This document shows positions 28,156 through 34,200 of a stretch of DNA of 64,000 nt, in pieces. Position numbers and translations under genes: made by a program. The notes under the pieces are model-generated. The model searched no databases and was not told where the DNA came from. It saw only the letters and a program-made list of their open reading frames with translations. Source of the stretch: Tubulanus polymorphus (lineage: Eukaryota; Animalia; Nemertea); contig NC_134032.1 of assembly GCF_964204645.1 (NCBI RefSeq), positions 12,016,275 to 12,080,274 on the forward strand, read 5' to 3'. Positions within the stretch are counted from its first letter, which is position 1. The number at the start of each line of letters is the position of its first letter.

Positions 28156-28526
28156 TGGCCACTGTGCTCAAAACGCCAATCGATTGCCAGTTGTCCGGGC
28201 TCAGCTTAGTGAGTTCGAATCCCTTTGCGGGTGATGAAAGAGCGATTTGGGCTCGGTGGCACTAGCGCCAGCGTTGGTTAAATAAAAATGTCATGTGGCT
28301 GTCAGCAATTTCTAGGGGCAGTCTAATTGGGCTGCAGATCAATATGACAGAGTGGTTCCTTTATCAGAATCCTCCCTTGTTCCTACAGAATCTTTCGGAT
28401 GATCGGAAACTAGGTGGAGAAGCAGAAACTAAATCAAGATCAAAATTTCCAGGGATCACAGATGTTATTCTTTATTCTCCATAAAACAAAACAGTTTGAG
28501 AAATCTATTTTCTTATTCAGAGAAAT

Positions 28527-30897
28527 TTACTGCTGTTCACCGCTGGGCATACTTCTAATGATATCACTGTCACCTGTAAATATACAAATAGAATTGACAT
28601 TAGAACAAAATGGATACATCCGGCACTACTTAAACCCCACCTTCCCTGGAATACACAACAGGAACCTCGTTAATTTCTATATTCAGTTCATGGTTTATAT
28701 TCTCAGAAAGATTTAGGTATACATCATCTATTATCAGGCGAAAGATGGTGATTTTGTCTTTCATCATAGAAATATCTTAAACATAACTATTAAAGCTATA
28801 TGTTTTTCATTTTAAATAAGCCTTCATACAATATAAACCAAGCAGGAAACCAATCCAAGGAGAGCAGAAACGGAGGATAAGCCAAGTCTATCCCGGTTCT
28901 GTCTGTTGCTATTCAAATGATTTAAGGTTTCAATGACTAAACTACCGGATCCTGGTGTCAAAAGAGCAGAGGAATAATTTCCCTCGTATAAACGTAACTC
29001 AGACAGAGGTTCGAAATAAAGGATTTTCTTCATAAGAAATAATCGTAACATATTGTCATCATTGTCACTGGTGGAAAAGAATAACACAGGTCGGCCACTT
29101 ATTTCGACTTGCGTAATCCAGGCTTGAACCAATCGATTAACAGTCACATACGTATGACTCAAAACAGAAATTGTTTGTTTTTACACGCGATCTAGCTATT
29201 CCCAAATATCTACGACCTTTTAATTGGGGATCGTTCATTTATTACATATGCATTAGGGGAGGGGTCAGTGCAATTGCGTACTGGGGTGAAAAAGTCAAAT
29301 TTCATGCGTACGCAATAAATGAATGATCCCTTAAGGAAAAGAATTTTCCCAGCTATAACAGTGGCCAGCCTGTATCATTCACAACTGAGATACTGAATCA
29401 TGGTTCAAAAGTGAACGAATAACGTTTCAGATTGTAGCTATGCAACGTGCTGACTGGTTTATCAGTGAAACCAGCAGCATAGCGAGCACAGCCGAGTTTA
29501 ATATCCACAAATGGGAAACGACGACCGAATCACGAAATTGAGACACCGGTCGTAGCTGATTTGTGGAGATTCGACGCGGACGTACGGAATCTCAAAACAT
29601 ACCTGGATCAGTGATGCTGAGCACGCAAACGCGGAAGTATTTACCGCACGACGTTCCCAAATCGATGTTATTGCCGTTGTAATGATGAACGCCGGTCTTC
29701 GCCAACATAGCGTAATATTCGATCTCACTCTTCCTACAAACGGACAAAAAAAAAACCACATCATTCACCATCAGCATCAGAAATAAGCTTTTTTCTAAAC
29801 CCTGTAAGAAACAATCGCGTCATCTACAATTTTGATAAATCTCTGGCACAGACGAGTCCTATTGAAGAGGATTGTCTCGGATATCTTTCAACTTACATCA
29901 GAGAACTGAAACGTGAAATCGCGGGGACACACAATGGACTGGCGGCAATAAACCAGGCTATATAACTATGTGTCTGTTACATGACTTTCTTATTCTTACC
30001 TCTCACCCTGTTCAACTGTGAAACATAAAACAAATTTTTGCATGAAAATGTTCAACGGACTTCATCTTTACCCCAATCTGGGAGCTCCGAAGCCTTTCTA
30101 CGAATACACTTCTTTCTTGTCTACTTTTTTAATTTATCTTCAATTACAGTATAACCCTACACAACTCTTGACCCAGTTCAACGCCTACCTCAAGTAACGA
30201 TTGGCCTCCAATAAAAATTCCCGAGTCCATAATTTAGTAACCGGGCCCAGGGAACTGTATCTTACCAACCACACCAAAAGAATCTTGAAACTGAACATAC
30301 CTTAAAGGTGGGGTGTTGTTAGCGATGATGACAAGTTTAGCTTTTCCTTGACGCAGAGTCTTCAGGGTCTGTTTGTAACCGAGCACGTACTTGCCACTTT
30401 TCATTACCAACGCCAAACGAGAGTTGATGCTCTCGATGGACTTTTTCTGGAAGAATAAAAAAGACGAATGTTATCAACTCCCCGAGCAAACCCATGATTA
30501 GCCAGCAGGAAACAATTGAGTCCGTTGCGCAGGTCTCAACAAATCGAGGGTAAATCATAGGGCTTAGTATATGAACATAACCACACACTTAAAACTGCAG
30601 TCACTAGAATTGATTTAAAAATTTAGTGTAGCCTCATATTAGCGGGGTTATCCTCATTTCAAACCTTTTTACAGGTCGAAAATTGGTGTAAGCTTGACTA
30701 GATTTGTTAATCATAGGCTCAAATCACTTTAGCTGAAGCCACCACATGATTAAAGCTTCCTTTTTCTAATTAAAATATTAAGCGAATAGGAATACAGGTA
30801 ATTAAGTTTATGTTCAATCGAGTATCATTTTGTTTTCTTAGATCAACCGACCGAAATAGGAATTTAAAATCCTTACCGATTTCTTGGTTGGTGCCAT
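28527..30897 (-). CDS. RPL30: 60S ribosomal protein L30 (eL30)
   Basis: Coding exons 30877-30897 (MAPTKKS), 30301-30446 ([29 protein letters not shown]...NNTPPLR), 29603-29733 ([35 protein letters not shown]...DP), 28527-28573 ([15 protein letters not shown]). Non-coding exon ~31063-31097 begins with a pyrimidine TOP-like tract. Confidence 0.98.
28697..28775 (-). ncRNA. SNORD51: Box C/D snoRNA, U51/U32A (yeast snR39/snR59)-like, guide for 28S Am (human Am1511 equivalent)
   Basis: Minus strand: ATATTTCT-ATGATGA(C)-AAGACAAAA-TCACCATCTTTCG-C-CTGA(D')-TAATAG-ATGATG(C')-...-CTGA(D)-GAATAT, with a terminal stem. The 13-nt guide is complementary to conserved LSU CGAAAGAUGGUGA, and the D'+5 rule gives the second A. 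Confidence 0.88.
28994..29068 (-). ncRNA. Box C/D snoRNA with 12-nt complementarity to 18S rRNA (CAGAGGUUCGAA)
   Basis: Terminal stem GTGAC/GTTAC, box C ATGATGA (29056-29062), box D CTGA (28999-29002), 75 nt. Guide TTCGAACCTCTG (29004-29015) lies just upstream of box D. Confidence 0.75.
29226..29335. mobile_element. ~105-bp MITE (Kolobok-like, TTAA-associated); related fragment ~45995
   Basis: GGGATCGTTCATTTATT ... AATAAATGAATGATCCC followed by TTAA. GGGCCATTCATTTATTGCGTAC recurs at ~45995. Confidence 0.6.
29430..29569 (-). ncRNA. Box H/ACA snoRNA with two 28S-complementary pseudouridylation pockets
   Basis: Hairpin 1: TCCACAAAT/ATTTGTGGA and ACGACCG/CGGTCGT. H box ATATTA (29499-29504). Hairpin 2: GCTGTGC/GCATAGC and CTGGTTT/AAACCAG. 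ACA at 29433-29435, 3 nt from the end. ~140 nt. Confidence 0.88.
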
Positions 30898-31084
30898 TTT
30901 ATTTCGTCTTTTTCTCTTCTAATTCGACGTCAAATTATACTGAAATTTAAAAGAGAAGGAACTATTAATATGAACATTATTTCAGTTGTACAAATTTATA
31001 AATTGACACGATAGTTTTCGAGATGAAAGCGGATAAATATCGGGACGAAAATTCAAACACACCTTGACTCAACGTCCACGTTAG

Positions 31085-31256
31085 CTGCAAAGGGATGAGG
31101 ATACGTCACTTCCGACGAGATTGGAGTTGAGTTCCCGCGAGATCTCGCCGCAACATATTTGTTTAAAGATGGCCGCCAGCGACTGACATTCCATCGGAAT
31201 TTCCAAAATTGCGGCAAATTTTATCGAAAAATCGACTCCGAAGGTGACCGTTCACG
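31085..31256. promoter_or_regulatory. Bidirectional RPL30/WDR35 promoter
   Basis: TCT/TOP-like CATCCCTTTG on the minus strand (~31088-31097), ETS-CRE CGGAAGTGACGT (31103-31114, minus), TCCCGCGAGA (31133-31142), YY1-like AAGATGGCCGCC (31166-31177). WDR35 ATG at 31257. Confidence 0.75.
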
Positions 31257-34200
31257 ATGTTTATCTATCTCAGTAAAAAGGTCAGTTGTTGAAGATCTAT
31301 TTCTGCATAAATATTTAATCATTATTTTAGTTTCTCTATGTTTAAACGGCTAAAATTCCGATCTTTATTTACTTCCGGGTTCTCTAAAATCGCACTATTT
31401 ACCGAAAAGACCTGTCGAAGTCGTGTTATACGTCAGTTCTTTTTAAAAATGACTTTGACAAAAAAACTTATTAGTGGGTGCCACTTAATTATCTATGCAA
31501 TATGCTTGCTTGATAAAAGGTCTGTGTGATTCACCTAAAATCCGGGCTAATAATTGAATAAAAAAAGTAAAATGATGAAATGTTAAAACTACGGTACCTT
31601 CCTTGAAGGGTACTCTGTAGAAAAAACTTTTGGTAAACACCCTCGATAAATTCCTGCTAAATAGAAAGTAGAGTTAGGATTCCAAAAAACTAAGTTGTTT
31701 TAGCCCGTTTGATGGGGCTACCCCTAGAGGCCTAATTGCATACATCCTCGCTTGTCAGGTTTTGATTGCTGTAGTATTTATAGAGCAAAAGTCTGGACGG
31801 TAAAAACCGCATCTGATTGGCTAGATATATAGACAGGTGGGCGCTTTGTGGGAACTGTCCGCCCAAGAAGTCTTGGGAGGATGATTGCATATACAGTTTA
31901 CCATTATTCTAATACTTACTACACGCAAGATTTCATGTTTGCCAAGTGCGCCACCTTTTTGCCCGTTATGAAACTCGTATGGATTTTAATTTATAGATCG
32001 CAATTCCGAACAACACGAGATTACGATGTTTATCGTGGAACGGGGAACACGGTTTCATCGCGTGCGGAGGCGAGGACGGCCTGTTGAAAGTTCTCAAATT
32101 AGAAACGCAGCCGGGCAAAGATTCGAAAGCGAAAGGGCTCGCCGCTCCGAGCAACCTGTCGATGAACCAAACGCTCGAAGGGCACAGTGGTAAGTGAGGA
32201 ATTCGCGAATATGAAAATACGCTTAAAAATCTAATAATGAAAAATTGAGTCTGAAATGTCTCCTTGAGTTAACAGTTCATTCCTTGTTTCGACTATATCC
32301 TAATACAGGGGTCCATATGACTCCGTGACATGTTAAAAACTTCTTCTTAACAGAAAATCCTTTTTAAGTTTCTTGAAACTCCTTTCATTTGAGCAAATTG
32401 CTCATAGCTCCTTCAATTTTGAGAAATAGGCAATGAGAAAATTTTGTCTAGTTTGTACAGTAAACTATTCCTAAATCAGTACAGTCACGATCAGGACTTG
32501 TGTTAAAGGGGGTTGCTGGCCGACAAACCGAGTTTCGGTAGTGTTAGGATAAAAGTTATTTTCAAAACCCCTGAGTTAATGGTTTACCGAGGTAAACAGT
32601 ATCAGTTTAGGAGGAGTCTACTATAATTAGGTTGTGAATGTGATACATGTACAGTGAGATGTTTCCTCGAAATTTCAAATTTTCTCTTTTAAAAACTCCT
32701 TGTATCCAGCAATGACTGATCTGTAGGGAGCCTGTTAACTATTAACTCAAAACAAAAAGATTTTGAATTTTTCATCATTAGTGTGTGGGATTTTTACCAT
32801 ATCATGGTTTCAACACGGATAGAATGTTTCATCGAGTAGGCCTATAAAAATTATATGCATAAAAAGAAAAATTTCAAAGATTTTTTTTTTGATGATTTTC
32901 AGGCGCAGTACAGGTGGTCACTTGGAATGAGCATCATCAAAAGTTAACGACCAGTGATCAGTATGGATTGATTATAGTCTGGATGCTTTATAAGGGTAAT
33001 CGGGTTTTTTAATGACCTAGAATAAGCCTCTTTGAGGAATACGCCGTATATTCTAATCGTATGATTTTATTCGTTCAGGTTCGTGGTACGAAGAGATGAT
33101 AAACAATCGTAACAAATCGGTCGTACGCAGCATGTCGTGGAATTCGGAGGGTCAGAAAATCTGCATCGTTTACGAAGACGGTAAGATTGATCGGCAGTTC
33201 GAACGATTCACTATAATTCAACTCTGATTTAACAGCTATCTACTAGAGGGGCTCAGTGTTCTCTGAGGCGTTTTTGTCTAGATGTTGATTTGTCAAATCA
33301 ATTTACCAAAGTAAATTCTGCGCATTTATCTACTCGATTTATCAAATTGATTCGGCTAATCAATGCATTTATTTAAATGATTACTCAAATCGATTTGATA
33401 AATCAAGCAAATTGCTAGTGGAGCGATTTGCTTGATTTGTCGAACTGATTTGAGTAGATTTACATGGAGAGTAAAGATGGCGGAAAAGAATCAGCAGGTC
33501 TCCCAGCACTGGTTGCTAATCCACGCGTTTATCTAACTTCAAATCGATTTATGAAATCAGCGAAACTAGTGGATCTGTAAATCCAAGGCGATTTGCTTGG
33601 ATAAAAACGCTTAGGTTTTAGAGGGCCGGCCACCCCTTTAATTTTTACATGCACCCAGTCTAAAAATCAGCCACCCCTTATAAGATATCTGCTGCCCCTA
33701 CCAGAGTGGATGTCAATATTCTATCAATGGTGATAATTGCTTTGAAGTCTATTGAGCTAATGTGATGAATAGAAGATTACGCCGAAATAAATAATTTTCA
33801 ATTTTTTTGGGGTGGAGATCGAAAGCCTTGCTACTTCAGCAGCCACAATGTTATACACTTAACGATGAATGCAGCCCCTTTAAAATTCCTGGAGCACATT
33901 GGTCGCTCTGTTTACCCGGACCCAGTTCCATAGTTTATGTTCAAGATTTTACTCTAGGTTTAACCCTTTCATGTTGCTAGTATAACACATTTTAATGTAA
34001 ACTCACCCTCAATTGATAACGATTGGTGGTATTCCAGTTGAAGATTGCAATTTCATGATTAACAGAAATCGATACAAGGGAAAAGGGGTGTATAAAAAAC
34101 CTAGCTCGGGCAGGAAATTACATGTATTATAATGTTAAAACATTGAAAATGACTTAGGCTTCTCGTGTATTAATTTGACAGGAGCGGTTATCGTCGGTTC

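Follow-up and report, generated by a model that had tools for sequence, protein, structure and literature searches.

The 64,000-nucleotide (nt) stretch of the Tubulanus polymorphus genome analysed here (contig NC_134032.1; hereafter the window) carries on its minus strand the four exons that make up the gene for ribosomal protein eL30 (RPL30). Within the second intron of this gene we found a 37-nt hairpin with the anatomy of a kink turn (K-turn), which lies 42 nt upstream of a 16-nt piece flanked by splice-site-like motifs and bearing a potential premature stop codon. The hairpin, with a short stop-bearing piece after it, recurs in the same intron in annelids and molluscs. Autoregulation of ribosomal proteins by binding to their own pre-mRNA is a textbook case in yeast. 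We lean, if not strongly, towards the view that intron 2 contains a comparable module, a candidate in which an autoregulatory eL30 K-turn would be coupled to unproductive splicing.

The translation of exon 2 is 90-100% identical to eL30 proteins. The genome holds exon 3 in single copy, and the idea of a paralogue or retrocopy carrying the micro-exon was rejected on this ground. The aromatic residue of the KYYR motif, which is needed for RNA binding by L30 (PMC3706390), is kept in the KYFR motif of the window's eL30.

The hairpin lies 207-243 nt into intron 2. According to PMC5061560, a K-turn is defined by a 3-nt bulge that has tandem G.A and A.G pairs on its 3' side. In all ten sequences compared (10/10), a NAN bulge is followed by an invariant GAU whose GA stands opposite the GA of an invariant GGA. 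Both the canonical stem 5' of the bulge and the stem continuing past the G.A pairs are 100% paired. Judged by these features of its sequence, the hairpin has standard K-turn anatomy, with the inner stem as the predicted canonical stem. Across species the layout runs from an outer stem of 6-7 bp through GGA on the 5' strand, an inner stem (2-7 bp) capped by a loop that varies, the NAN bulge and GAU on the 3' strand back to the outer stem. The RNA oligonucleotide of the yeast L30 site is laid out alike: between the two strands of its outer stem come, in turn, GGA, the inner stem with its loop, a 3-nt bulge and GAU (PMC3706390, Table S1). The initial annotation of this DNA had proposed a search for a K-turn, and the hairpin that emerged matches the yeast L30 site in all letters of the loop except the bulge. 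Minimum-free-energy folds agree with both stems. The thermodynamic z-scores of the hairpins are unremarkable (-0.6 to -3.2), and the support for the structure is covariation, not stability.

The element is also unique within the genome. A structural regular expression (regex) describing it has one other, weaker match in both strands of the window (128 kb). With a covariance model (R1) the eL30 site is the top match in the 268-Mb genome at 46 bits; the runner-up scores 31 bits and is without GAU. This second site (G000:C1:40887-40931; L055 1501-1545) has a palindromic GAATTC outer stem and a GGA, with no eL30 sequence adjoining, and is probably a chance match. The organism's own 28S ribosomal RNA matches neither the strict regex nor R1; a loose K-turn scan of it lists candidates, none of which can be assigned to helix 58. 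An Rfam scan of 28500-31500, with E up to 10, gave nothing at the hairpin or the micro-exons. The scan's Thr_leader match at 29746-29884 was dismissed as noise.

For comparison with other species, exon 2 with its open flanks was searched as a 78-codon genomic open reading frame (ORF). Several of the matches are themselves genomic ORFs of other species that run from intron 1 through exon 2 into intron 2, and the intron position after ...PPLR is common to these species. The loci compared came from three such ORF proteins and from eight proteins of NCBI genome assemblies. Exon 2 DNA is only 75-80% identical to that of these relatives, and the introns cannot be aligned except for one short block, which is the hairpin. 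First found by sequence in three distant relatives, it was detected by the structural regex in eL30 intron 2 of the window, L001, L003/L004, L027, Capitella, Mytilus, Lamellibrachia, Dimorphilus and Dreissena, and Octopus eL30 intron 2 matches R1 at 36.7 bits. The hairpin sites of the other species score 44-57 bits with this model. Altogether nine species besides that of the window, annelids and molluscs among them, carry the hairpin in eL30 intron 2, such that the element is tied to the eL30 gene in 10/10 species. Its distance from the exon 2 donor ranges in the relatives from 33 nt to 3.5 kb.

In the alignment of these hairpins (A2), pairing holds in 97 of 97 cells, and at five pairs both sides have changed in a compensatory way. 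The outer stem of Mytilus and the inner stem of Dimorphilus, for example, differ from the others yet stay paired. None of 500 shuffles reached the observed values and slid controls were at most 53% paired. The GGA, the middle A of the bulge and the GAU are invariant. A strict motif scan of metagenome contigs returned 39 matches, and the sole one of low GC content (L027) again falls within another eL30 gene, in its intron 2. GC-rich contigs account for the remaining 38, mostly in recurring contexts that resemble bacterial coding DNA.

Only the hairpin and the acceptor and short exon adjoining it are recognisable between species, that is, above intronic background. A T-rich tract and an AG end 33-42 nt past the hairpin in 9/9 species with enough downstream sequence (null 0.23 each, from random anchors in the same introns), and branch-point-like motifs, where present, fall 7-16 nt past it. 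The AG is followed directly by NTGA in six of the nine (null ~0.006), an immediate in-frame stop after the phase-2 exon 2. The remaining three have an in-frame stop within 11 codons, so that the short piece contains one in 9/9. In 8/9 a GTA donor gives the piece a length that is not a multiple of three (null ~0.03), and in four lineages (window, L004, Lamellibrachia and Capitella) exactly 16 nt precede this donor. Because the criteria for this downstream module were chosen with the data in view, and L003/L004 and Lamellibrachia are closely related, these nominal probabilities are too favourable. Even allowing for post hoc criteria and kinship, the pattern lies far beyond chance.

Three splice-like motifs in intron 2 had been proposed in the initial annotation to form a chain of cryptic micro-exons, serving eL30 feedback through unproductive splicing. 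The motifs are present on the minus strand exactly as given, with gaps of 94 nt (29999..29906) and 95 nt (29896..29802) between them. The reading-frame arithmetic is likewise correct on local translation. Because exon 2 ends in phase 2, the 16-nt piece reads AGT TGA and gives an in-frame TGA; the 29801 acceptor reads AGG GTT TAG, also a premature stop, and the 9-nt piece by itself keeps the frame. The predicted premature stop from an alternative exon was thus borne out, at the level of sequence, for the 16-nt piece. The chain as a whole was not: for the 9-nt piece and the 29802 acceptor no counterpart can be recognised in the relatives, whose introns are unalignable there, and no RNA support was seen, and conservation of the splice sites in relatives holds for the 16-nt piece and fails for these two. 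What stands of the feedback proposal is strengthened by the K-turn 42 nt upstream of the 16-nt piece and by conservation of the module in annelids and molluscs. Neither the 9-nt piece nor the 29802 acceptor belongs to the conserved module, and both may be there by chance, although species-specific use of the 9-nt piece, one of eight such configurations in the window, may occur. A recursive splice site at the 16-nt piece was rejected, since no donor is regenerated at the AG: the letters after it are TTGAAC in the window and, in most relatives, NTGA.

These observations suggest a model in which eL30 outside ribosomes would bind the intron 2 K-turn, by analogy with yeast L30 and its pre-mRNA. Binding would divert intron 2 from the join of exon 2 to exon 3 towards an unproductive outcome. 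In one such outcome the 16-nt stop-bearing exon would be included, to yield a substrate of nonsense-mediated decay (NMD); additionally or instead, excision might stall and the intron be retained. By either outcome a surplus of eL30 would lower eL30 output. The putative module consists, in order, of K-turn, T-rich spacer of 33-42 nt, weak 3' splice site, short stop-bearing exon and GTA donor. We infer that eL30 is what binds, which way the effect runs and that splicing includes the micro-exon at all.

Several observations weigh against this model, in the first place those from RNA. All runs consist of assembled contigs, from which rare variants have been dropped. Run X1 has a flat depth of about 30 and is DNA-like, while X2 is RNA-like. 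In X2, one contig joins 30301 to 29733, the canonical junction of exons 2 and 3, at a depth of 22,796, and unspliced intron 2 is represented by an unbroken contig over 29706-30253 (depth 390) that takes in the hairpin and both micro-exons. Run X5, which was taken for RNA, contributed nothing. The proposed micro-exon junctions were not seen: no contig of any run has a junction at 30015, 30000, 29905, 29897 or 29801. Rare variants are lost from such contigs and NMD would thin out the isoform; the absence is thus a weak negative, though these contigs are the only evidence from RNA. A contig over 29254-29735 also has high depth in X2. The depth over distal intron 3 is 39, and unspliced intron 2 is ~10 times deeper. 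By these depths the canonical splice prevails, retention is commoner for intron 2 than for distal intron 3, and a micro-exon isoform, if made, is rare in the X2 sample. We also considered truncated proteins as products of a poison isoform. All of ~40 short eL30 protein matches end in ...PPLR plus intron read-through and are therefore genomic ORFs; none ends as the poison isoform would. Apart from this, a contig of depth 22 in run X3 joins 30225 to 30455, skipping 229 nt (30226-30454) with all of exon 2. The ends of the skip, TC..GA, are not splice-like; faulty assembly, filtering or a deletion allele might account for it.

Further objections come from the sequences. The acceptor of the conserved short piece has A at -3 in 8/9 species and is unusually weak, the L003 allele is without the donor (GAT in place of GGT), Dimorphilus has no clear donor, and the exon boundaries are ambiguous in three molluscs. 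Model R1 found no element in mayfly intron 2, in a beetle or in L002. In the beetle Aethina tumida (L046) no intron interrupts the eL30 gene where exons 2 and 3 meet; the coding sequence is instead split 57 nt before that point. In another NCBI assembly (L060) the intron between exons 2 and 3 is 57 nt long and leaves no room for the element. Some lineages have therefore lost the module or never had it. The bulge is NAN here and AGA in yeast, and another protein of the L7Ae family could be the ligand. Finally, the simplest effect of a protein bound 7-16 nt before a branch point would be to obstruct the 3' splice site concerned, which by itself would favour productive splicing. The direction of the feedback is thereby left unexplained; activation of a site by binding so close to the branch point is supposed here by analogy with the logic of feedback.

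As to the read-out, inclusion of the poison exon is favoured by the conservation of the in-frame stop and of a length that is not a multiple of three, and by the nematode precedent: in Caenorhabditis elegans, according to Takei et al. (2016; PMC4937301), knock-down of rpl-30 raises the productive share of its own mRNA, the other isoform being NMD-sensitive. A stall leading to retention is favoured because the K-turn lies on the region that the U2 small nuclear ribonucleoprotein (snRNP) must occupy, because yeast L30 blocks U2 recruitment on its own transcript (PMC8047918), and because unspliced intron 2 is in excess with no inclusion junctions seen. The two read-outs are not mutually exclusive and can coexist.

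A stricter version of retention, which strikes us as rather unlikely, holds that the micro-exon is a decoy that is not included at all. In that case, eL30 on the K-turn would block the U2 snRNP at the cryptic branch point and the half-assembled complex would tie up the exon 2 donor, leaving intron 2 retained. The K-turn does end 7-16 nt upstream of the branch-point-like motifs where these exist, the repression of U2 recruitment by yeast L30 is a fitting precedent, and the tenfold depth of unspliced intron 2 over distal intron 3, with no inclusion junction, is what such a decoy would give. However, it leaves the kept in-frame stop and the non-multiple-of-three length unexplained, as a retained intron is already out of frame. 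Contig depth, moreover, is a poor measure, and intron 3 hosts small nucleolar RNAs (snoRNAs) and may turn over differently.

The splice-like sites might also be chance decoys in an AT-rich, T-rich intron that are never used, the intron leaving as one 567-nt unit. Consistent with this, X2 shows just the canonical junction and the unbroken unspliced intron, acceptor-like tracts occur at ~3.5 per kb in the window, and the 9-nt piece and third acceptor lack counterparts; the T-tract of the latter is polymorphic, with a substitution at 29809 in run X1. In contrast, a crude, post hoc pattern scan (a pyrimidine-rich tract and YAG, then GTAAG within 3-30 nt) finds eight micro-exon-like configurations in the 64-kb window on both strands, or ~0.06 per kb per strand, and two of the eight are on the sense strand of intron 2, against ~0.03 expected in 567 nt. 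GTAAG itself occurs three times in the intron against ~0.4 expected. This excess, though suggestive and post hoc, points beyond chance. The decisive support, strong but confined to the 16-nt piece, comes from the comparison with other species: its position, length, stop and donor recur beside a covarying hairpin in introns that are otherwise unalignable. An origin of the sites as chance decoys is, in our judgement, distinctly improbable.

A different ligand is a further alternative. The hairpin might be bound by another L7Ae-family protein (SNU13/15.5K or NHP2), as a suppressor of intron excision or a remnant of a box C/D ribonucleoprotein, and be unconnected with eL30 dosage. Box C/D motifs have this G.A/A.G core too, including the GAUGA of one strand, and a 2026 preprint describes thousands of intronic 15.5K-bound K-loop/K-turn RNAs that are proposed to lower excision of their host introns. 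Such RNAs are small and excised, carry their C box 5' and their D box 3', mostly lack a canonical stem, and number thousands per genome. Here, however, the strand order is reversed and the short strand reads CGGA, and the hairpin has neither the RUGAUGA towards the 5' end nor the CUGA towards the 3' end that mark box C/D RNAs. The site matches no Rfam family, the element occurs nowhere else in the genome and is linked to eL30 in all ten species, and its loop letters apart from the bulge equal those of the yeast L30 site. We regard this alternative as highly improbable. Scarcely credible is the proposal that the hairpin belongs to an unrecognised small RNA gene in intron 2 (snoRNA, small Cajal body RNA or other) with the splice-like sites irrelevant: ribosomal-protein introns often host snoRNAs, as intron 3 of eL30 does, but conservation extends over only ~37 nt plus the T-tract and AG, there is no guide-like conserved single strand, there is no Rfam match at E up to 10, and a box C/D or H/ACA snoRNA hidden in intron 2 was rejected by eye, no boxes being in proper arrangement.

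Returning to the favoured reading, a K-turn that would let eL30 direct unproductive splicing of its own intron, the closest systems in their working are the yeast RPL30 K-turn and the alternative splicing coupled to NMD (AS-NMD) of nematode rpl-30. Yeast RPL30 (L30/L32) likewise has a K-turn in its own pre-mRNA, with GGA opposite NNNGAU, a U.G as the next pair and then the outer stem, and acts on splicing near a splice signal; the candidate site here is near splice-site-like motifs. The yeast site, however, is formed by the 5' exon and takes in the 5' splice site of the gene's only intron, a defining feature of the yeast element, whereas ours is inside intron 2 and always precedes a cryptic acceptor by 33-42 nt. 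Yeast closes the inner stem with a C-G pair, where G.U predominates here. For yeast RPL30 both binding and repression have been demonstrated, whereas the present element is known from comparison of sequences. C. elegans rpl-30 is, like the present case, an animal eL30 gene with a stop-bearing isoform, seen there only when NMD is off. Its alternative intron is conserved among related nematodes, and the accessible part of that paper's text (PMC4937301) describes no cis element or K-turn.

Two other systems share single features with this one. L10ARE (RPL10A/rpl-1) is a short intronic element, conserved across metazoan phyla in an orthologous ribosomal-protein intron, that is bound by its own gene product and shifts splice-site choice to an NMD isoform. 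It differs in protein and RNA motif, and lies between two alternative 5' splice sites and not upstream of a cryptic 3' splice site. In archaea, L7Ae, of the same protein family, regulates its own mRNA via a K-turn in the 5' leader (PMC5539422, PMC6298567); control there is translational, in a prokaryotic leader, with no splicing.

The initial annotation had called its multi-micro-exon version of the feedback undescribed. This was only partly right: for C. elegans rpl-30, both feedback through splicing and an isoform sensitive to NMD have been published, with no cis element in the part of that paper available. No description of an intronic K-turn in an animal eL30 gene was found in a literature search covering few subscription journals, and a 2020 review cites only the yeast case. 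Feedback of animal eL30 has so far been a phenomenon in one nematode without an RNA element, and the 37-nt covarying K-turn provides a concrete candidate for the cis element. The presence of hairpin and stop-bearing tiny exon in annelids and molluscs suggests that these animals also let eL30 limit its own output. A broader proposal is that the eL30-K-turn feedback of yeast is also used in lophotrochozoans, wired to the branch-point region of a 16-nt poison micro-exon rather than to the 5' splice site, and is either ancestral or re-evolved; to us this is close to evenly balanced, with a slight tilt against. If true, eL30 feedback would be among the oldest or most often reinvented protein-RNA regulatory contacts in eukaryotic gene expression, and the module would be a natural K-turn-protein switch over a micro-exon. 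Such a switch would bear on the recognition of very short exons, on how NMD helps to keep ribosome components in balance and on designing splicing switches that respond to a protein, and the element can be used in model searches for such modules in other genomes.

Features of the eL30 gene and of its intron 2, in coordinates of the window
Feature	Position	Strand	Remarks
Exon 1 (coding sequence)	30897..30877	minus	
Exon 2	30301..30446	minus	146 nt; phase-2 end with AG; translation is eL30, PF01248
Intron 2	29734..30300	minus	567 nt; GTATGT...TAG
Exon 3	29603..29733	minus	
Intron 3	down to 28574	minus	
Exon 4	from 28573	minus	
K-turn hairpin	30058..30094	minus	37 nt; structural regex, covariation, model R1, minimum-free-energy fold
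Hairpin, NC (outer) stem	30094..30089 with 30063..30058	minus	
Hairpin, GGA	30088..30086	minus	
Hairpin, C (inner) stem	30085..30081 with 30074..30070	minus	
Hairpin, loop	30080..30075	minus	
Hairpin, 3-nt bulge	30069..30067	minus	AAA
Hairpin, GAU	30066..30064	minus	
Spacer	30016..30057	minus	42 nt; branch-point-like UUCAU (A at +15 from hairpin), T-rich tract, cryptic acceptor AG 30017..30016
Candidate poison micro-exon	30000..30015	minus	16 nt; between ...tttcacag and gtaaga; starts TTGA
Donor-like GTAAGA	29994..29999	minus	3' of the 16-nt piece
Splice-flanked 9-nt piece	29897..29905	minus	between ...cgtttcag and gtaagt (donor from 29896); seen in sequence only
Third acceptor-like tract	29802..29813	minus	...ttcttacag, AG at 29803-29802; seen in sequence only

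In Dimorphilus (L052, ~1320-1335), the cryptic acceptor repeats the 3' strand of the K-turn almost exactly (AAGATGAAGTC), such that the 5' strand could pair with either copy; elsewhere there is a weak echo, AG-NTGAA. This repeat could hint at an alternative pairing or at an origin by duplication. Alternative pairing with a second 3'-strand copy at the acceptor was not adopted as a general feature, the copy being perfect only in Dimorphilus and weak elsewhere.

Intron 3 contains, at 28695-28772 on the minus strand, a box C/D snoRNA resembling Me28S-Am982 (Rfam; 45.6 bits, E 6e-6, gathering score 49), and a second C/D-like stretch lies near 28994-29068. The same intron holds a high-copy repeat at 29227-29333, with a summed contig depth of about 3,300-37,000 in three runs. 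Many of the contigs run on from it into unlike flanks, and it is probably part of a mobile element, of the short interspersed type or another.

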